This document shows positions 2,304 through 20,283 of a stretch of 20,283 bases of DNA, piece by piece. The notes below the pieces were generated by a model. The model made no database searches. It worked only from the letters and a program-made list of their open reading frames with translations, and had not been told where the DNA came from. How positions within the stretch are numbered: position 1 is the stretch's first letter; each line of letters begins with the position of its first letter. The stretch is from Trichoplax adhaerens (lineage: Eukaryota; Animalia; Placozoa): positions 1 through 20,283 of the forward strand of contig NW_002061028.1 of assembly GCF_000150275.1 (NCBI RefSeq), in the 5' to 3' direction. The position numbers were made by a program, and so were the translations under genes.

Positions 2304-2509
2304 AGGGAACTATGAACTTTTAGGTTAAAAAGTGGTCTAAGGCTATAGATATGATAATAAGAGAGGTTCAAAGGTTGTATTTAATGGTTTCTGTAAAATT
2401 CATTCAGTAAAAAGACATGTTTTAGGATCATCCAAATTTTCTGCATACTCCAATATACCGATACTCATATTTTATAACTTTCTGATAAAAGGTTATTTTA
2501 TTGAAAGAG
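2304..2509 (+). repeat. Left extended terminal inverted repeat (206 bp)
   Basis: Aligns without gaps to the reverse complement of 6207-6412. First 50 bp identical; 21 mismatches over 206 bp by manual count. Confidence 0.95.
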
Positions 2510-2565
2510 CGAATATTTCTTTTAATTTTATAATTTTCAAACATTAACTTTCCGTAAAATAATTA

Positions 2566-5457
2566 TTAGAGTATCATACTTTTATTAATATTGTACTCTC
2601 CATATAATACAACATTTTCCCATCCAATTGGACTTATATGTTTAATCATTGAGAGATCTACCCATTCTGGGATATCACTCTCCCTTAAAATTCGACTCAT
2701 CTCATTTGCTTGCCAATATATTATACAGGCCATTATTAAAGTTAAACAGTTACAACTATTTCTTTGTGCTATTAAATCACGTCCTGTAATCTTACCTTGA
2801 TTACCATAATTTATATCTCTTGCTAATTGATGCATTTCTTCTCCCTTCAATAAATCTTCATTTCTTTTTTTTCGTATTTCTGGGTCAACCATGCTTTTTA
2901 ATGTATTTGCTGTTTTAAATATACGGCCTAATTGTAAATTAGCTTTATAAAATTCATTTTTTGAGTTAAATGACAATAGCTTTCTCATTGCAAGAGATGC
3001 ACTAACATGCCCTGTAGATATAGAGGCATAAAAATGTGCCATTCTATCCCATTGATTGACTATACTTGTCATATCTATTGTACTTTCTTTATGAGTCAAT
3101 AGTGGACTCAAACTTTTATAATTTCTATTATTATCTATTTTAAATATATTATGATTTTGTATTCCTCTTATTCTTGGATTAAATTTACTTCCAATAAATG
3201 CAAAAGCAGAGAATGTTATTGCACCTGCTGCTGCCGTATCTGTAAAATGTTCTTCCAAAGGCAAATCACTTTCGTTATATAGCTTACCATCTAACACATG
3301 AGCTCCCTCACTTTCATAACATTGAATTGGCTTACTTAAAAATGGCGCATAATTGTCAGCAACAAAAGTATAAAATTTTAAAGCAAATTCTCCTAGCTTT
3401 ACACTAAACTCTTGCTGTAAAACTTTCTCTTTAAAGGTTACTAAATGGCTATCACTACTAGACCTCTTACCTTCTCCCCAATTCTTTGTAATATTTAATT
3501 TTGATATTGCATTTACTATCCATGCCAGTGCTGTTCTTAATGCTTCATCAGTTAATTGCCAATCTGTAATTCTCTTCATATAATCATATGATACATCGCT
3601 TACTAATTGAGCCATAGTATAAATACCTATATTACATCCATGGGCCATTATAGTTAATATAAGACCACATATATCTTCTTTAATTCTTAAGTTTTCTTGA
3701 TTGGGTAGCATAAATGCTTCTGTAAATTGTAATTTATTATCTACTTCTACTAATAAATCAGGTAATTTGATGCTTCTCAAATTACTTTCAATTAAATTTT
3801 TTAAAAATGTTAAGGATTCTTGTTGTTTTTTTGTTAATTGCTCCCCAGGATCACGTTTTAACTCCCACTTACCATCCACTATTCTAGCATGTTTATTACC
3901 TTTCTCTCCTATAAAATAGGTATCATAAGCTTGACCTAAATAGTTAGTTAAAAAAGCCTCAGCATTTCTCGCATTTGATGGAAGCTTATTGTTATGAAAA
4001 AATTCTGTCATATAGTTTTTCCAGATATATTCAGGCATAAAAAACCTATCGAAAGAACTAAACCTTTTTCCATTTTCTAGAACTAAATTGTTATGTTTTA
4101 AATCTTCTTTGATTTTAAATAATAATGCGCATTCCCAAGCTCTTCTATCTATTTTTCCATTTGTAATTACAAATTTCTTTATTCCCTTTGATATAAACTT
4201 AGTTGGAATATCTTTTGGCAATTGACGTTTTTTCTTTTTGTTTAAATTTTTTAAAATCTCTATTGCCTTTAGTATATCTGATTTACTTCCTTCTTCTAAT
4301 TTTATTTCTAAGCTTTCTACTAATTTAGGAGTAAATTGCCTAAAATATCCATACTTTTCTACAAATAAATTAAATGCATGCCTATATTTCCCTGCTAATA
4401 ATAATTCTAAGTTATCTTTTTTAATTAGCTCTGCTTTAAATTTTTTATATAAAACTGTTCTTAATTCAATATCTGGTACAGTTTCATCTCTTACTACTTC
4501 CTTTATTTTTGAATAATTTTCTAGAGCTTTCCTTATTTCTTTTTCGTTTTGTGTTACTTTTAGTTTAATAATTTTATCTGCTCTTTTATAACTAGAAGAA
4601 AGTAATTTTATGCAAGACTCTGCTAAAAAATCATTATTATCTTTGTAACTTTGGTGTAAGAAGCATACAATTGCTGCATACCTGTATAAAGGATCTATTC
4701 TCCTTAATCTTGTAATTGAATATGACTTAACTTCTCTTGTTAATATTTTTTGATAATTATTATTGATCATACTTACATCAATAGATAATGCTCCAGTACT
4801 CCTTATATATTCTAATTTCTCTAATAAATTAAGAATTCCGTTTACAGATGCTCGATATGGAGGTTTCTTTAAAAACTCTAATTTAGATATTGTGCTTTGG
4901 CTTTCTAATAATAAATTTAGATTATCAATAATTTCTAAAGATAATTTTTGTTGTACATTGTCAAAAATAGCCTTTCTTGCTCTTTGCCTTTCTCCTGATA
5001 TTATCTTTGATAATCTAATCTCTGTTGGTGACAATATTCTATTCTTTTTTAAATACAATATTGTTTTGCTCTTTAGTAAGCTTTTTGCTTCTAATCTTAA
5101 AGCTTCATTATATACATATTCTTTAGTTTTTACTTCATTTTCTGTATCAAATTTACTAATACATAAATAATTTGTAATCTCTTGTTGATGTTCTATGATT
5201 TTAAATCTGTTTCTAGAATATTTTTCAATTTTATCTGCATCTACCTTAATTTGTAGGCCTACAAACGTTACTATTTCTTCTATAACCTCAAAAGGTGCTA
5301 TTTTAGGAAAGTAATTAAATAATTTTACAAAGGCTACCTGATAACCAAATCCTAATTTATTATAATCATTCCTGCATCTATTAACAGCTTGTATATCAGT
5401 GTTCTTTAATGTGCCATATTCTACAAGACTTTGCTGTGAAAAATTTTTATCAGCCAT
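2566..5457 (-). CDS. tnpA: Tn3-family transposase (963 aa)
   Basis: DUF4158-like N-terminus (NKLGFGYQVAFVK). Motifs IDRRAWECA, LPDLLVEVD, WGEGKRSSSD, HFTDT, KGEEMHQLAR and HISPIGWENV. The D-D-E catalytic triad appears intact. Confidence 0.97.
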   Translation of the reverse strand: MADKNFSQQSLVEYGTLKNTDIQAVNRCRNDYNKLGFGYQVAFVKLFNYFPKIAPFEVIEEIVTFVGLQIKVDADKIEKYSRNRFKIIEHQQEITNYLCISKFDTENEVKTKEYVYNEALRLEAKSLLKSKTILYLKKNRILSPTEIRLSKIISGERQRARKAIFDNVQQKLSLEIIDNLNLLLESQSTISKLEFLKKPPYRASVNGILNLLEKLEYIRSTGALSIDVSMINNNYQKILTREVKSYSITRLRRIDPLYRYAAIVCFLHQSYKDNNDFLAESCIKLLSSSYKRADKIIKLKVTQNEKEIRKALENYSKIKEVVRDETVPDIELRTVLYKKFKAELIKKDNLELLLAGKYRHAFNLFVEKYGYFRQFTPKLVESLEIKLEEGSKSDILKAIEILKNLNKKKKRQLPKDIPTKFISKGIKKFVITNGKIDRRAWECALLFKIKEDLKHNNLVLENGKRFSSFDRFFMPEYIWKNYMTEFFHNNKLPSNARNAEAFLTNYLGQAYDTYFIGEKGNKHARIVDGKWELKRDPGEQLTKKQQESLTFLKNLIESNLRSIKLPDLLVEVDNKLQFTEAFMLPNQENLRIKEDICGLILTIMAHGCNIGIYTMAQLVSDVSYDYMKRITDWQLTDEALRTALAWIVNAISKLNITKNWGEGKRSSSDSHLVTFKEKVLQQEFSVKLGEFALKFYTFVADNYAPFLSKPIQCYESEGAHVLDGKLYNESDLPLEEHFTDTAAAGAITFSAFAFIGSKFNPRIRGIQNHNIFKIDNNRNYKSLSPLLTHKESTIDMTSIVNQWDRMAHFYASISTGHVSASLAMRKLLSFNSKNEFYKANLQLGRIFKTANTLKSMVDPEIRKKRNEDLLKGEEMHQLARDINYGNQGKITGRDLIAQRNSCNCLTLIMACIIYWQANEMSRILRESDIPEWVDLSMIKHISPIGWENVVLYGEYNINKSMIL

Positions 5458-6026
5458 TAATCATTCCAAAACTTTGTAAATTTTGTAGGTAGAATTTCAG
5501 TATATCTTACTGTATGCCTTATATTTTTATGCCCAAGATATTGTTGTATACTACGTGTATCATGCGATGCATTTGCTAATTTAAAACCAGTGGAATGTCT
5601 TAGCATATGGGGATGAATCGATAATTCTATTCCTGCATTCTCACCAGCTCTAGTTAATATTTTGCTAAATGTTGATGTAGTAAGAGGACTTTTTCTTTCT
5701 GAAACAAAAACATACTGAGTTTCTGGATACTCTCTTTTTACTTTCCTTAATGCCCTTAACTCAGGACCAAATAATGGATGTGCACTATCTATACCATTCT
5801 TTAATCTATTTATCTGTATAGTACCTATATTGAAATTTATTTGTTGCCATTTTAAAGTTAATAATTCTCCTACTCTGAGTCCATGCCTATAAGCCATTAA
5901 AATCATTGTTGCATCTCGATTTTTATGACGTCCTATATTTTTAGCTGCTGTAATTATTTTTTCTATCTCATCTTCTGTTAAATATTCACGCGCTCTTCTA
6001 TCTTTATTTTTAGGCTTTTTTAGCAT
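5457..6026 (-). CDS. FimB/FimE-like tyrosine recombinase (189 aa), probable cointegrate resolvase
   Basis: REYLT, RDATMILMAYRHGLRVGEL, RLKNG, HPHMLRHSTG, IQQYLGHKNIRHTVRYT give a complete R-K-H-R-H-Y catalytic set with no N-terminal core-binding domain. Its stop overlaps the tnpA start (TAATG). Confidence 0.93.
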   Translation of the reverse strand: MLKKPKNKDRRAREYLTEDEIEKIITAAKNIGRHKNRDATMILMAYRHGLRVGELLTLKWQQINFNIGTIQINRLKNGIDSAHPLFGPELRALRKVKREYPETQYVFVSERKSPLTTSTFSKILTRAGENAGIELSIHPHMLRHSTGFKLANASHDTRSIQQYLGHKNIRHTVRYTEILPTKFTKFWND

Positions 6027-6132
6027 AAGTTGTATAATGTTTATTTAATATTTATATCTTTCAGTAAAAAGGACATTGAGTCTAATTAACATTAGGATCT
6101 TTATCATAGCACTTGTCAAGTGAAAAATTTTT

Positions 6133-6166
6133 AACATTCAATAAAAGGTACCATTTACTGAATGTT
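6133..6166. promoter_or_regulatory. Putative tyrosine-recombinase core site (13-8-13)
   Basis: AACATTCAATAAA-AGGTACCA-TTTACTGAATGTT; the arms are inverted repeats with 1 mismatch. Located upstream of the recombinase gene. Confidence 0.7.
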
Positions 6167-6206
6167 TTTTATTGTAAATTTACATACTATAGGTAGTATT
6201 TTTAGC

Positions 6207-6412
6207 CTCTTTCAGTAAAAGAAACTTTTATCAGAAAGTTATAAAATATAAGCATCGGTAAATTGGGATGTACAGATAATTTGGATTATCCTAAAGCATG
6301 TCTTTTTACTGAATATATTTTACAGAAATCATTAAATACAACCTTTACATCTCTCTTATTCCCATATCTATAGCCTTAGACCACTTTTTAACCTAAAAGT
6401 TCATAGTTCCCT
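6207..6412 (-). repeat. Right extended terminal inverted repeat (206 bp)
   Basis: Reverse complement of 2304-2509 at about 90% identity. Confidence 0.95.
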
Positions 6413-6666
6413 TATTACAAAAATTAAGAAAAATATGAAGAACTGTTTGATGCATGTTAAGGATAAATTGATGCTTAAAAAGCGGTCATTGGTAGAAACC
6501 ATCTTCTCTTCAATGAAATGCTTGCAAACCCTAATTCACTCTAGACATAGGTCGCCTATCAACGCTTTCTCTCATCTTTTCGCTGGGTTAATAAATTATC
6601 AACTTAGATCAGATAAGCCTGCTATTGATAAAAATCTATTCATCATTTCTTAAATGCAGCTCGGGT
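6413..6666 (+). mobile_element. IS982-family 3' remnant (transposase C-terminus + right IR)
   Basis: ITKIKKNMKN..DKLMLKKRSLVETIF..HSRHRSPINAF is the IS982 C-terminal signature. The end reads 5'-ACCCGAGCTGCATTTAAG on the minus strand. Cut off at its 5' side by the Tn3 end. Confidence 0.85.
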
Positions 6667-6770
6667 TTATTTTAATTATTCATTATACAAATATAATCAC
6701 TTTTAAACATTTAATCTTTTAGCTGTTCATACTTTTATACATTAAACCTTTTATATGGTTGCATTTTCTT
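6413..6770 (+). repeat. 358-bp segment duplicated in inverted orientation at 19033-19390
   Basis: Appears identical to the reverse complement of 19033-19390; includes the IS982 end plus 104 bp of non-IS flank. Confidence 0.95.
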
Positions 6771-12899: not shown

Positions 12900-14873
12900 A
12901 TGATTATAACAAATTTAAATCAAGATAATAGTTGCCATGTTAATGGTTTTGAAAGTTTATTAAAAAGAGCAGTTGATTGTACAGATCAGAGTTGTTCTAG
13001 TGGAGCTTACTTTGTAGAGCAAAATGATGGACAAGCTCTATATAATCTAGGCACTACTATTGGAGGGCCTCAAACAACGGTGCAGATGGGCAAGACAACT
13101 GAATGGAGTGAGAGTCGATACGCAATACTGATCGCAAAAGGTAACTATACAATGAATGGTTACTTTAAATTAGGATATTATACTCAAGTAGCTGGTGTTA
13201 GTGATAATAGTGATTCTGTTATATTATCTCCTGGTATAAATGTCTTAAATAATTGTGTTAAAGCTTTTAATGCTGATGGGAGTCAAAATTCTAGATGTTA
13301 TGCTCCTGGTGGACTTGATAATTTTTGGCGCAGTTTATCGGATTTGAAGATGAACATAGCTAATGATCCGGTATTACGTTTTGCTGTATCTCAAGCATCG
13401 CCAATTAGGGATATCAATATTGAAGGGAGTGCGGGCATATTAATGTGTGATTGGAATACAGACATAGGGTGTGGTTATACTAGTGGTGGCTTTATTGATA
13501 AGATGAAAGCATCAAGCATTGGGTTTGGCTCTCAACAACAATTTTATATATCAAATTCTCAATCTAATCAATTAATAGCTGGAGCTTGGAACATACTGTC
13601 TAATAATAATAATGTAGATAGCATAACGGGAGCGGGTGATGTTAATGTACAAAATAGATGGCCTGGATATCCATTTACAAAGATTGATGATACTACAATG
13701 ACTCGATTTCAAAAGCCTAAATTAGTAAAAGATGGAGATCAATGGCATGTACAATACGATTATAAGGCTAGTCCGATTAGTGATTTTATTGTGGTGCAAC
13801 TCAATCAAAAAGAAGATCGAACAAAAATATCTTCATATGATGTTCATAATATTAATAATCAATTAATAAACAAAGTAGGTATGATAGTTATGCCAGGTAT
13901 TTATGATCTTGATGATACACTGTATATACCTAACAATAAAATAGTATTAGGTATAGGTTTGCCGTCATTTGTTTGCCCACCTAATACTGGGAAGTGTATG
14001 ATAACAGAAAGTGAGGGTATAAGAATAGCTGGATTAGTATTTGATTCGCCAGTGGCTAGTTCTTTAGACACAAATAGTGATGCTATAATTTTGAATATAG
14101 GAGAAGAGGGAAGTGGTATATCTACGAATCCTGTTGTATTACAGGATGTGTATTGTAGAATTGCACATATAAAACCAGAACAAATTGCTTCTTCCGCATA
14201 TAGTTGTGTTAAGGTTAATGCAGATTATACAATTGGAGAAAATTTGTGGCTATGGAGAGCTGATCATGATGCGAAGTTTATAAATGTATTAGCAAATGCA
14301 GCTAAAGCTCCTTACGGATTAATAGTACATGGAAATAATGTAAAAATGTATGGTTTATTTGTAGAACATTTTCTAAATTACCAAACTGTTTGGTTTGGAA
14401 AAAATGGGCAAGTGAATTTTTATCAGTCTGAAATTCCTTATTACTTGCCAGAAGGAGGTATAACAAAATGTTCTTTACCTTATTCTGATTTGGTTGATGA
14501 GACTCCTGCTTGCGCCTCTTTGTATATTACTAAAAGTGCTACAGGATTTACTGCTAATGGTTTAGGTATATATTCTTATTTTCCCAATAAAAATGAAAGA
14601 GGCTCACAAGCAGGAGAAAAAGAATTTTATCAAGATACAATAAGAGCCAAGTCTGCAATTATAGTAGATGCAGAAAATGTTGTTTTGACTCATGGATTAA
14701 CCCATTTCTTAGATGGAGATTTAAGTAGTGGAATTGATAACGTAATTCAGTATAAAAGCAATTTGTACTATCCGGAAAATAGTTATGTTAATGGAAGTAC
14801 AAATAAAATAGGATATGCTTTTGATGAATTTCGCATTGATAGTGCTACAGTTAGTAGTAGTGATGAGCTATAG
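12900..14873 (+). CDS. Glycoside hydrolase family 55 (bacterial type) exo-beta-1,3-glucanase-like protein
   Basis: Ordered motifs RYAIL..G.Y, GYYTQVAG, NFWRS, AVSQASP, SGGFI, SQQQ, PGIY, VLGIG, WLWRADH, YGLFVEH, FYQSEIPY and GLGIYS match Streptomyces Lam55A-type enzymes. Confidence 0.85.
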   Translation: MIITNLNQDNSCHVNGFESLLKRAVDCTDQSCSSGAYFVEQNDGQALYNLGTTIGGPQTTVQMGKTTEWSESRYAILIAKGNYTMNGYFKLGYYTQVAGVSDNSDSVILSPGINVLNNCVKAFNADGSQNSRCYAPGGLDNFWRSLSDLKMNIANDPVLRFAVSQASPIRDINIEGSAGILMCDWNTDIGCGYTSGGFIDKMKASSIGFGSQQQFYISNSQSNQLIAGAWNILSNNNNVDSITGAGDVNVQNRWPGYPFTKIDDTTMTRFQKPKLVKDGDQWHVQYDYKASPISDFIVVQLNQKEDRTKISSYDVHNINNQLINKVGMIVMPGIYDLDDTLYIPNNKIVLGIGLPSFVCPPNTGKCMITESEGIRIAGLVFDSPVASSLDTNSDAIILNIGEEGSGISTNPVVLQDVYCRIAHIKPEQIASSAYSCVKVNADYTIGENLWLWRADHDAKFINVLANAAKAPYGLIVHGNNVKMYGLFVEHFLNYQTVWFGKNGQVNFYQSEIPYYLPEGGITKCSLPYSDLVDETPACASLYITKSATGFTANGLGIYSYFPNKNERGSQAGEKEFYQDTIRAKSAIIVDAENVVLTHGLTHFLDGDLSSGIDNVIQYKSNLYYPENSYVNGSTNKIGYAFDEFRIDSATVSSSDEL

Positions 14874-17524: not shown

Positions 17525-18085
17525 TTACTCAAAACTTGCCTTCCAATTATATAATGTTTGTCGTGAAATTTTAGCCATTCTTGCAATATATGCAGATGTA
17601 TATTTACCACTATTAAGCATATCTACGTATTCTTTTCTAATGTTCTCATCTACTCCATAAGCTCTCCCTTTATATTTCCCTTGTTCCTTAGCTCTTTTCA
17701 CTCCCTCGTAAATTCTTCTGTTTATCAATTTTCTCTCAAATTCTGCTATTGATCCCATCATATTAAACATTAACATTCCAGTATCAGTGTTTGTATCCAT
17801 TTGCTCTTTTAAACTTTGAAATTTTACTCCTTTTTCTTGCAAATTATTAATTATTTCAATTAAATCCTTTAAACTTCTCCCTAATCTATCTATTGCAGTG
17901 ATCACAAGAATATCACCTTCTTGAACTTTATTTAATAACTTTGATAATTCTTTCCTCTTAGAATTAGCTCCACTTATTATTTCTGAATAAACTTCTTTGC
18001 ATCCTGATCTTTTTAACAAAGATATTTGCTGATCTAATGATTCGCATTGTTGTTTTGTAGAAACACGAGCGTAACCAATTTTCAT
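17525..18085 (-). CDS. Serine resolvase/invertase
   Basis: KIGYARVST, DRLGRS, AEFER and a C-terminal HTH (IARMAKISRQTLYNW). Its stop overlaps the TniA-like start. Confidence 0.95.
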   Translation of the reverse strand: MKIGYARVSTKQQCESLDQQISLLKRSGCKEVYSEIISGANSKRKELSKLLNKVQEGDILVITAIDRLGRSLKDLIEIINNLQEKGVKFQSLKEQMDTNTDTGMLMFNMMGSIAEFERKLINRRIYEGVKRAKEQGKYKGRAYGVDENIRKEYVDMLNSGKYTSAYIARMAKISRQTLYNWKASFE

Positions 18086-18632: not shown

Positions 18633-19034
18633 ATGATTGCTATCGACACCAATATTCTAGTTAGATACATTACTCAAGATGATGAAATACAATCTAAAAC
18701 TGCTGAAGACTTATTATCAGAATATAATGGAAAACCTCAATCAATTTTTATTAATAATATTGTATTATGTGAATTGGCCTGGGTTTTAGACAGGGGGTAT
18801 AAATATACTAAAGAGCAAATAGCTGCTACAATTAGAATTATTCTTTCAACAACTGTATTTACTTTTGAACATCATAATATTCTTTGGATCGCACTGGAGG
18901 ACTATGATCAGAATAAAGCTGACTTTGCAGACTGTTTAATTGTTCAATTAAATAAATTTCATGGCTTTCAACAAACTTTTACTTTTGATAAATCAGCAAC
19001 TAAGCACAATCTTTTTACTTTGTGCAATACTTAA
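18633..19034 (+). CDS. vapC: VapC-family PIN-domain toxin
   Basis: MIAIDTNILVR, LCELAWVL, ADFADCLI and FTFDK carry the acidic PIN residues. Confidence 0.9.
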   Translation: MIAIDTNILVRYITQDDEIQSKTAEDLLSEYNGKPQSIFINNIVLCELAWVLDRGYKYTKEQIAATIRIILSTTVFTFEHHNILWIALEDYDQNKADFADCLIVQLNKFHGFQQTFTFDKSATKHNLFTLCNT

Positions 19035-19390
19035 GAAAATGCAACCATATAAAAGGTTTAATGTATAAAAGTATGAACAGCTAAAAGATTAAATGTTTAA
19101 AAGTGATTATATTTGTATAATGAATAATTAAAATAAACCCGAGCTGCATTTAAGAAATGATGAATAGATTTTTATCAATAGCAGGCTTATCTGATCTAAG
19201 TTGATAATTTATTAACCCAGCGAAAAGATGAGAGAAAGCGTTGATAGGCGACCTATGTCTAGAGTGAATTAGGGTTTGCAAGCATTTCATTGAAGAGAAG
19301 ATGGTTTCTACCAATGACCGCTTTTTAAGCATCAATTTATCCTTAACATGCATCAAACAGTTCTTCATATTTTTCTTAATTTTTGTAATA
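19033..19390 (-). repeat. Inverted copy of 6413-6770
   Basis: Reverse-complement match; the boundary overlaps the vapC stop codon. Confidence 0.95.
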
Positions 19391-19431
19391 AGAGTTGTTC
19401 CTTGTTCAAATAAATTATTGAACAGCTTTTT
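19137..19431 (-). mobile_element. IS982-family 3' remnant, second copy
   Basis: Same as 6413-6666 plus 41 bp more coding sequence (KKLFNNLFEQGTTL) before the Tn3 end. Confidence 0.85.
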
Positions 19432-20283
19432 AGGGAACTATGAACTTTTAGGTTAAAAAGTGGTCTAAGGCTATAGATATGATAATAAGAGAGGTTCAAA
19501 GGTTGTATTTAATGGTTTCTGTAAAATTCATTCAGTAAAAAGACATGTTTTAGGATCATCCAAATTTTCTGCATACTCCAATATACCGATACTCATATTT
19601 TATAACTTTCTGATAAAAGGTTATTTTATTGAAAGAGCGAATATTTCTTTTAATTTTATAATTTTCAAACATTAACTTTCCGTAAAATAATTATTAGAGT
19701 ATCATACTTTTATTAATATTGTACTCTCCATATAATACAACATTTTCCCATCCAATTGGACTTATATGTTTAATCATTGAGAGATCTACCCATTCTGGGA
19801 TATCACTCTCCCTTAAAATTCGACTCATCTCATTTGCTTGCCAATATATTATACAGGCCATTATTAAAGTTAAACAGTTACAACTATTTCTTTGTGCTAT
19901 TAAATCACGTCCTGTAATCTTACCTTGATTACCATAATTTATATCTCTTGCTAATTGATGCATTTCTTCTCCCTTCAATAAATCTTCATTTCTTTTTTTT
20001 CGTATTTCTGGGTCAACCATGCTTTTTAATGTATTTGCTGTTTTAAATATACGGCCTAATTGTAAATTAGCTTTATAAAATTCATTTTTTGAGTTAAATG
20101 ACAATAGCTTTCTCATTGCAAGAGATGCACTAACATGCCCTGTAGATATAGAGGCATAAAAATGTGCCATTCTATCCCATTGATTGACTATACTTGTCAT
20201 ATCTATTGTACTTTCTTTATGAGTCAATAGTGGACTCAAACTTTTATAATTTCTATTATTATCTATTTTAAATATATTATGAT
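19432..20283 (-). mobile_element. Second, directly repeated copy of the Tn3-family transposon (partial, runs off the window)
   Basis: Appears identical to 2304-3155. Confidence 0.95.
19694..20283 (-). CDS. tnpA: Tn3-family transposase, 3' part (second copy)
   Basis: Translation identical to the C-terminus of 2566-5457. Confidence 0.9.
   Translation of the reverse strand, partial: HNIFKIDNNRNYKSLSPLLTHKESTIDMTSIVNQWDRMAHFYASISTGHVSASLAMRKLLSFNSKNEFYKANLQLGRIFKTANTLKSMVDPEIRKKRNEDLLKGEEMHQLARDINYGNQGKITGRDLIAQRNSCNCLTLIMACIIYWQANEMSRILRESDIPEWVDLSMIKHISPIGWENVVLYGEYNINKSMIL

Follow-up and report, generated by a model that had tools for sequence, protein, structure and literature searches.

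The 20,283-bp contig NW_002061028.1 of the Trichoplax adhaerens assembly GCF_000150275.1 (105.6 Mb in 1,414 contigs), which was analysed in its entirety and is called the window below, carries a complete 4109-bp Tn3-family transposon (copy A; 2304–6412). Both of its genes lie on the minus strand and encode a transposase, TnpA, and a 189-aa tyrosine recombinase related to the DNA invertases FimB and FimE. On the basis of sequence comparison, we propose that this small enzyme is the cointegrate resolvase of the element, and we put the probability of this reading at roughly 70%. The Tn3 family is the textbook case of replicative transposons and a major vehicle for resistance and virulence genes. 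The recombinase gene and a conserved array of putative recombination sites are both present within the element and together suggest a fourth Tn3 resolution module, besides TnpR, TnpI and TnpS/TnpT. The proposal draws on the gene content of the element, the phylogenetic placement of the recombinase, its linkage to tnpA, the exchange of serine and tyrosine enzymes between sister lineages and a conserved, co-varying site array, all of which were established computationally.

The transposon is bounded by terminal inverted repeats (IRs) of 208 nt (2302–2509 and 6207–6414) that are 90% complementary. Comparison with relatives placed the true tips at 2304 and 6412 (AGGG...TAAG), giving a tnpA-side arm at 2304–2509 (plus strand) and a recombinase-side arm at 6207–6412 (minus strand). 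The outermost 38 nt of each arm (2304–2341 and 6375–6412) form a canonical Tn3-type end. Both tips read AGGGAAC...GGTCTAAG, in line with the format of Tn3-family IRs (around 38 bp, with a GGGG-like start and a TAAG end), and the tip is kept in 11 elements. Beyond it, the repeat runs on to 208 nt, which is unusual for the Tn3 family. The interior holds an intact tnpA (2566–5457, minus strand), coding for a DDE transposase of 963 aa, and the recombinase gene (5457–6026, minus strand). Base 5457 is common to both open reading frames (ORFs), as the recombinase stop codon TAA overlaps the tnpA start codon (TAATG). Between the IRs there is no further ORF of at least 60 aa, except for antisense ORFs within tnpA. 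An earlier, first-pass annotation of this DNA had described an intact tnpA with a coupled recombinase and nothing else inside the IRs, and our ORF, IR and family analyses agree with that description.

TnpA matches the Pfam families DDE_Tnp_Tn3 (1.3e-100) and, in its N-terminal region, DUF4158 (1.3e-21). It scores 600 bits against the NCBIfam model transpos_Tn3 (cut-off 500) and aligns over its full length (residues 7–957) with the Tn4430 TnpA structure 7qd8 at an E value of 8e-92. Its transposase and its IR tips both place the element in the Tn3 family. A second copy of the transposon (copy B; 19432–20283, minus strand) lies in direct orientation and is ended by the contig end, so that it comprises the tnpA-side IR arm and the 3′ part of tnpA. 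Over these 852 nt it is 100% identical to 2304–3155. The identical second copy indicates that the element multiplied recently, and copy A has all the marks of an intact, recently active replicative transposon. Megablast of the element against a plasmid collection returned no match.

The recombinase matches the Pfam family Phage_integrase (1.1e-46) over residues 15–178, and the N-terminal domain is absent, as expected of the catalytic-domain-only enzyme of 189 aa that had been annotated initially. In an alignment with FimB, FimE, TnpI and XerD, the residues R51, K76, H140, R143, H166 and Y175 are invariant. This assigns the protein to the tyrosine recombinase superfamily, with a complete catalytic set. 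The same alignment reveals around 100 extra N-terminal residues in TnpI and XerD that FimB, FimE and the window protein do not have.

Comparing the recombinase with characterised enzymes places it close to the invertases. The best NCBIfam models are the FimB/FimE-type 'tyrosine-type DNA invertase' models PRK09870 (165.2 bits; cut-off 221) and PRK09871 (155.1 bits; cut-off 222), and the identity to E. coli FimB and FimE is 42–44%. In phmmer comparisons, the window protein scores 155 bits with FimB, 38–60 bits with reference XerC/XerD genes and only 28 bits with Tn4430 TnpI, for which the reference sequence was taken from pHT73. A careful IQ-TREE analysis of 31 catalytic domains united the window protein and 19 homologues in one clade (97/99), and a 100/100 branch parts this family, FimB and FimE from Xer and TnpI. 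Moreover, an approximately unbiased (AU) test rejected a tree uniting the family with TnpI (p 0.017). Scores, split and test thus all reject a grouping with TnpI, and the recombinase falls with FimB/FimE instead. The tree is best read as placing the family as sister to FimB/FimE, outside that subfamily. Accordingly, the first-pass label of a FimB/FimE-like enzyme is right about the nearest relatives, whether judged by models, identity or tree, but too narrow, as the protein belongs to a sister family that scores below the model cut-offs.

The putative recombination sites are built from a 9-bp motif. With one mismatch allowed, the 9-mer TTTACTGAA occurs 29 times in the window, compared with 14.8 ± 3.8 expected, and six of the seven exact matches are located within the three transposon ends that the window contains. 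Motif comparison revealed four sites on the minus strand at the recombinase end. Site A (6305–6327) consists of a motif at 6305–6313, exactly 100 nt from the tip, and a weaker tandem copy at 6319–6327. Site B (6211–6236), which forms the inner edge region of the recombinase-side IR arm, is a 9-8-9 inverted pair whose centre reads AAAAG/CTTTT. The core site (6137–6162), TTCAGTAAA-TGGTACCT-TTTATTGAA, is likewise a 9-8-9 inverted pair; it is the candidate crossover site. Lastly, motif P (TTTACTGAA; 6060–6068) precedes the recombinase ATG by around 35 nt and is separated from the core arm by 77 nt; it is a candidate accessory or autoregulatory site. A 9-8-9 inverted geometry is the format of many tyrosine-recombinase crossover sites. 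The tnpA end contains site A′ (2403–2411, minus strand), a single motif TTTACTGAA at 100 nt from the tip with a weaker copy at 2389–2397, which mirrors the position of site A, and site B′ (2480–2505), a 9-8-9 inverted pair at the IR inner edge with one clear arm (2497–2505) and one degenerate arm. Being inside the long IR, A and B are present at both ends of the element, and the core and P are unique.

This arrangement is conserved among relatives, which are cited here by locus number. In ten elements with a readable tip, counting from that tip, A is found at 100, B at 176/193, the core at ~250–261/267–278 and P at ~345–355 nt, and neighbouring sites are spaced by ~76–77 bp. An alignment of 11 sequences limits conservation to the 38-nt tip and four islands, namely A, B, the core and P, with variable DNA in between. 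The motif reads TTCAGTAAA in the window and L014 and TTCCCTAAA in the other elements, and the change affects every site. Such co-variation is what would be anticipated of sites that follow the specificity of a protein evolving along with them. A scan for promoters and terminators was uninformative (23 promoter-like sites, with 26 expected in AT-rich DNA), and we claim no promoter, noting only that a stretch with TTG is conserved between core and P.

A module of an inverted core and a motif 77–78 nt downstream, just before the gene, recurs with lineage-specific sequences beside other members of the recombinase family. This core-plus-P module is present in Tn3 types with divergent or convergent gene order (L009, L010, L023, L040 and L049), on a Francisella plasmid and at lone loci (L032, L037/L039, L047 and L056), as a rule with one core per locus. 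Recombinase and site therefore behave as a portable cassette, which suggests that the ancestral crossover site is the core rather than site B.

To place the element among its relatives, we collected 52 loci from a scan of one genome per species and 12 more from an alignment-based TnpA scan of metagenomes, a metagenome scan with a single TnpA query having yielded no confirmed relative. In all 13 of the closest homologues (65–94% identity; L014–L021, L044, L075–L077 and L083), the recombinase gene is located directly upstream of a tnpA of the same clade. The linkage that had been seen in a single element is thus consistent throughout these relatives, whose hosts include Rickettsiales, Legionellales, Berkiella, Megaera and Paraglaciecola, in addition to metagenomes. 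The closest is L014, from an uncultured Rickettsiales genome from a lake (recombinase 94% and TnpA 91% identical); TnpA identity to the other coupled elements is 43–48%. The one-base stop/start overlap is kept in 13 further elements, mostly as TAATG, with TAGTG in L021 and TGATG in L044. Nine full-length coupled TnpAs form one clade in the TnpA tree (support 100), and within the coupled clade the TnpA and recombinase trees give matching sub-groupings.

The sister TnpA clade, which shares 36–45% identity with the window TnpA (tblastn), has a serine resolvase instead. Its gene is co-directional and just upstream of tnpA in L078, L079, L081, L082 and L085, and divergent in L086 and in Rickettsia asembonensis pRAS02. 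That sister TnpA lineages have either a serine or a tyrosine enzyme at the same place is the strongest comparative evidence for the small recombinase standing in for the resolvase. In the elements compared, IR length tracks recombinase type: IRs measure around 200 nt in tyrosine-type elements (208 in the window, 211 in L014, 207 in L077 and ~210–217 in L015 and L021), as against 37–38 nt in the two serine-type sisters with visible ends (L085 and pRAS02).

More distant members of the recombinase family (50–63% identity) are linked to at least three other TnpA lineages. The order relative to tnpA is divergent in Skermanella L010, L023, L040 and L049, convergent in Nostoc L009 and co-directional in L036 and Legionella L006. 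In the last of these, on the Legionella pneumophila plasmid NZ_CP021280.1 (4992–9204), a second, short tyrosine recombinase gene comes between the FimB-like recombinase and the coupled Tn3 transposase. The second enzyme groups with TnpI/Xer, so that two different tyrosine recombinases are present in one module.

We hypothesise that the transposon proceeds through the following cycle. TnpA would act on the 38-nt AGGG...TAAG tips and generate a cointegrate with two direct copies of the element. In both copies, recombinase protomers would bind the 9-bp motifs in the array upstream of their own gene. Strands would then be exchanged at the unique 9-8-9 core, across its 8-bp spacer, which would free donor and target, each with one copy. 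P, A and B would function as accessory sites, which may confer resolution selectivity and repress the recombinase–tnpA operon, and could possibly also influence TnpA at both ends in the manner of TnpI in Tn5401. The binding of the recombinase to the motifs, the role of the core as crossover point and the resolution outcome are all predictions from the DNA.

Several observations weigh against this model. The closest characterised relatives of the recombinase, FimB and FimE, are invertases and not resolvases. Site B shares the 9-8-9 geometry of the core and is inverted at the two ends, which makes inversion mechanistically possible. For around half of the distant members, no tnpA is present in the several kb around them, so the recombinase family is not dedicated to Tn3 elements. 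The two direct copies in the window are seemingly kept around a 13-kb replicon segment, even though an efficient resolvase would be expected to split them, except if isoforms were joined in the assembly or copy B has no core. Finally, a 5-bp target duplication is absent at copy A (flanks CTTTA and TATTA, with tips at GGG, AGGG and TAAGGG tried) and likewise in L015, L021 and L077, and present in the serine-type L085 (AATGA) and pRAS02 (AATTT). The missing duplications may be due to copies having exchanged their flanks or to chimeric assembly across the long IRs.

The assembly of such elements can go astray. In L075, the flanks (1–105 and 4221–4325) are reverse complements of each other, and the IR, 327 nt long at 98%, extends as far as the ends of the contig. 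The probable cause is a fold-back in the assembly brought about by the long IRs, and the case serves as a warning on reading target duplications from short-read contigs of long-IR elements.

The surroundings of the two copies in the window are also unusual. A fragment of an insertion sequence (IS), coding for the C-terminus of a DDE_Tnp_1_3 transposase, immediately adjoins copy A at its recombinase-side end (6413–6770). The same fragment, in inverted orientation and extended by 37 nt, immediately adjoins copy B at its tnpA-side end (19033–19431). The two fragments are 100% identical over 360 nt, so the 13-kb segment between the direct copies is bracketed by inverted IS fragments. If the arrangement were a cointegrate, the right flank of A should equal the left flank of B, which is not the case. 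We also rejected a circular wrap-around as the origin of copy B, because the sequences left of A and of B differ. The arrangement is not derivable from any single transposition or cointegration event that we considered.

Comparing IR arms within and between elements revealed a further peculiarity. Beyond the 38-nt tip, the arms within an element are 87–95% identical, whereas orthologous arms of the window (2304–2509 and 6207–6412) and L014 (141–351 and 4042–4252) share only 71–78%. Arms that are closer within an element than between orthologues indicate that they evolve in concert, including the spacer DNA between the motifs. One tentative and on balance unlikely explanation is that site B is a second functional crossover site, at which the recombinase would recombine the two ends of a transposon, or an end of one copy with that of another. 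On this reading, the long IRs would be more than extended ends, and the resolvase would in addition reshape or control the ends of the element. If B-site recombination did take place, it would give inversion of the interior, flank exchange between copies and homogenisation of the arms, and would account jointly for the concerted arms, the missing target duplications of tyrosine-type elements and the odd junctions of copies A and B.

Family members that lack a neighbouring tnpA bear on what else the enzyme could do. Some are found on plasmids beside partition genes, for example on Francisella pFNE_1 and in Rhodospirillum rubrum. The chromosomal members L026, L029, L032 and L035 adjoin genes for large secreted or surface proteins, with neighbours that include a reprolysin–RCC1 protein, a He_PIG/PQQ protein, DUF7453 and a serpin. 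At L032, one extra inverted motif copy is located 1.1 kb downstream of the recombinase gene. Some of the lone chromosomal members might be true invertases.

The plasmid-borne members, which have the core-plus-P module next to their partition genes, raise the question of whether the window enzyme is mainly a plasmid-maintenance passenger or a regulator rather than a resolvase of the transposon. It would then resolve plasmid multimers, or repress the operon and tune the binding of TnpA to the ends, and cointegrates would be left to homologous recombination or to a serine recombinase of the plasmid (17525–18085). Such a serine recombinase, sharing 34–42% identity with the resolvases of the serine-type sisters, is indeed present on the contig, and the position of P just upstream of the ATG, together with motifs near both tips, would suit a regulator. 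Nevertheless, the gene is translationally coupled to tnpA and co-inherited throughout the clade, and the full set of catalytic residues argues against a role in DNA binding only. We therefore regard this explanation as improbable. It is also largely compatible with a resolvase function, as any site-specific system with one site per copy resolves cointegrates.

A FimB/FimE-like invertase would recombine the inverted B sites, or B with the core, and thereby flip the transposon interior or a promoter piece, switching the expression of tnpA or the recombinase. The family relationship of the enzyme, the core-like geometry of the inverted B sites and the concerted evolution of the arms, which implies some exchange between them, all speak for this. 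However, flipping DNA between near-identical IR arms would bring no functional change, the promoter region, being located between core and gene, would move along with the genes, and B and the core are only ~50 bp apart. The enzyme resembles FimB and FimE in its size and single domain, yet it scores under the curated cut-offs of their models, and two inverted sites bracketing a short promoter segment are not found: the core (6137–6162) is unique, and the only repeated full sites are the B sites, ~3.7 kb apart with one in each IR arm. In other Tn3 lineages and on plasmids, too, each locus as a rule has one core and no inverted partner, and in the sister TnpA clade the equivalent slot is filled by serine resolvases. 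Taken together, this makes an invertase a poor candidate, although both this explanation and the passenger or regulator partly overlap with the resolvase reading.

That the recombinase is an independent integrative cassette, landed beside tnpA by chance and without a role in the transposon life cycle, is very improbable: members of the family do occur in many unrelated contexts, including chromosomal loci by secreted-protein genes, but the one-base overlap has persisted across the coupled elements, the recombinase and TnpA trees share sub-groupings, the motifs are built into both terminal repeats and no separate boundary or repeat surrounds a cassette inside the element.

The window itself is interpreted as a plasmid-like contig from a rickettsial endosymbiont in the Trichoplax adhaerens assembly. 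This assembly is known to include rickettsial endosymbiont DNA with a plasmid-type parA (PMC3641634). The contig fits this picture because of its GC content of 21–32%, its plasmid-type genes and the location of the closest relative of the transposon, L014, in Rickettsiales. Family scans detected TraF/TraH fragments, ParA, an IS256-type transposase, integrase-core fragments and the serine recombinase mentioned above. The latter (17525–18085, minus strand; Resolvase domain, 2e-44) is encoded outside the transposon, has no adjoining tnpA and may be a plasmid multimer resolvase or a relic of a serine-type sister transposon. A PIN-domain protein (8.5e-12; 18633–19034, plus strand) ends exactly where the inverted IS fragment starts, a few hundred bases from copy B, and may be the toxin of a plasmid toxin–antitoxin pair. 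An intact ORF of 657 aa (12900–14873, plus strand) has no Pfam match even at an E value of 0.1.

Neither the transposon family nor the idea that resolution modules can be exchanged is new. As far as could be checked, the recombinase class, the site architecture and the long, site-bearing IRs are undescribed. A full-text literature search yielded no description of a FimB-type resolvase in Tn3 elements; ISfinder and TnCentral were outside its coverage, and a named entry may exist there. Database records label the genes only as 'tyrosine-type recombinase/integrase', and their annotation would improve if the family were recognised. The first-pass statement that no characterised example was known accordingly holds for the searchable literature, but the design itself is widespread and not unique to this contig. 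A small recombinase module has spread among intracellular bacteria, cyanobacteria and planctomycetes, and the case illustrates a free exchange of resolution cassettes between transposon lineages. If our reading is correct, the element provides a very small natural resolvase-plus-site pair with specificity variants (AG vs CC in the motif) built in, useful for studying site choice and directionality in an enzyme without a core-binding domain. Moreover, the motifs in both long IRs would represent a second, independent case of the cross-talk between recombinase and transposase reported for Tn5401.

A survey of 190 Tn3-family members distinguished three kinds of resolvase (TnpR, TnpI and TnpS+TnpT), with TnpI found in three elements only (mBio 2020). 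In the Tn4651 group, which includes TnXax1, Tn3-family cointegrates are resolved by the tyrosine recombinase TnpS (mBio 2020). The window recombinase is unrelated to TnpS in sequence. TnpS, annotated in pXAC64 with 424 aa, is far larger and needs the divergently encoded helper TnpT, with the site placed between the two genes, whereas the window element has no third gene inside its IRs. TnXax1 TnpS and the window protein gave no phmmer match at E ≤ 1e-5, and we rejected membership of the TnpS/TnpT type.

When comparing the window recombinase with FimB and FimE, the similarity is found at the level of the protein. All are single catalytic domains of ~190–200 aa, and the sequence identity, the best-scoring models and the sister position in the tree described above point in the same direction. 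The differences concern the setting. The window family forms its own clade below the model cut-offs, is coupled to a transposase and, in window-type elements, has one unique core per element, whereas FimB and FimE act on two inverted sites, one on each side of a short promoter segment. The hosts differ as well, with Enterobacteriaceae for FimB/FimE and Rickettsiales, Legionellales, cyanobacteria and Planctomycetes for the window family.

The serine-type sisters such as pRAS02 resemble the window element in TnpA (36–45% identity), in the resolvase slot, which is the same in five elements, and in a similar tip, GGGTATTA...CGTAAAT...TAAG. They differ in having a serine recombinase and, in L085 and pRAS02, IRs of 37–38 nt and 5-bp target duplications.

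The overall architecture of the window element is reminiscent of Tn4430 as found in pHT73. Both have the order IR, site array, recombinase gene and tnpA, with the two genes co-directional, and the Tn4430-like layout recognised in the first-pass annotation is borne out by this order and by the array with its inverted core. In Tn4430, the resolution site consists of an inverted core and two accessory motifs, which have 9 bp in common and make the reaction selective for resolution, and the window site likewise combines an inverted core with extra motifs sharing a 9-bp sequence. TnpA is homologous over its full length, although only ~25% identical. The recombinases differ in structure: TnpI is a two-domain, Xer-like protein of 284 aa, unlike the 189-aa window enzyme with no N-terminal domain. 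This is accompanied by distinct site dimensions. Whereas the window array measures ~350 bp with a spacing of ~76 bp, that of Tn4430 measures 116 bp. The window element further differs from both Tn4430 and Tn5401 in its IRs of ~208 nt, which hold two of the sites, and in the overlap of its genes by one base. In Tn5401, a TnpI motif is located near each end and TnpI regulates expression from the site (mBio 2020). The window element shares with Tn5401 this placement of a recombinase motif close to each end.

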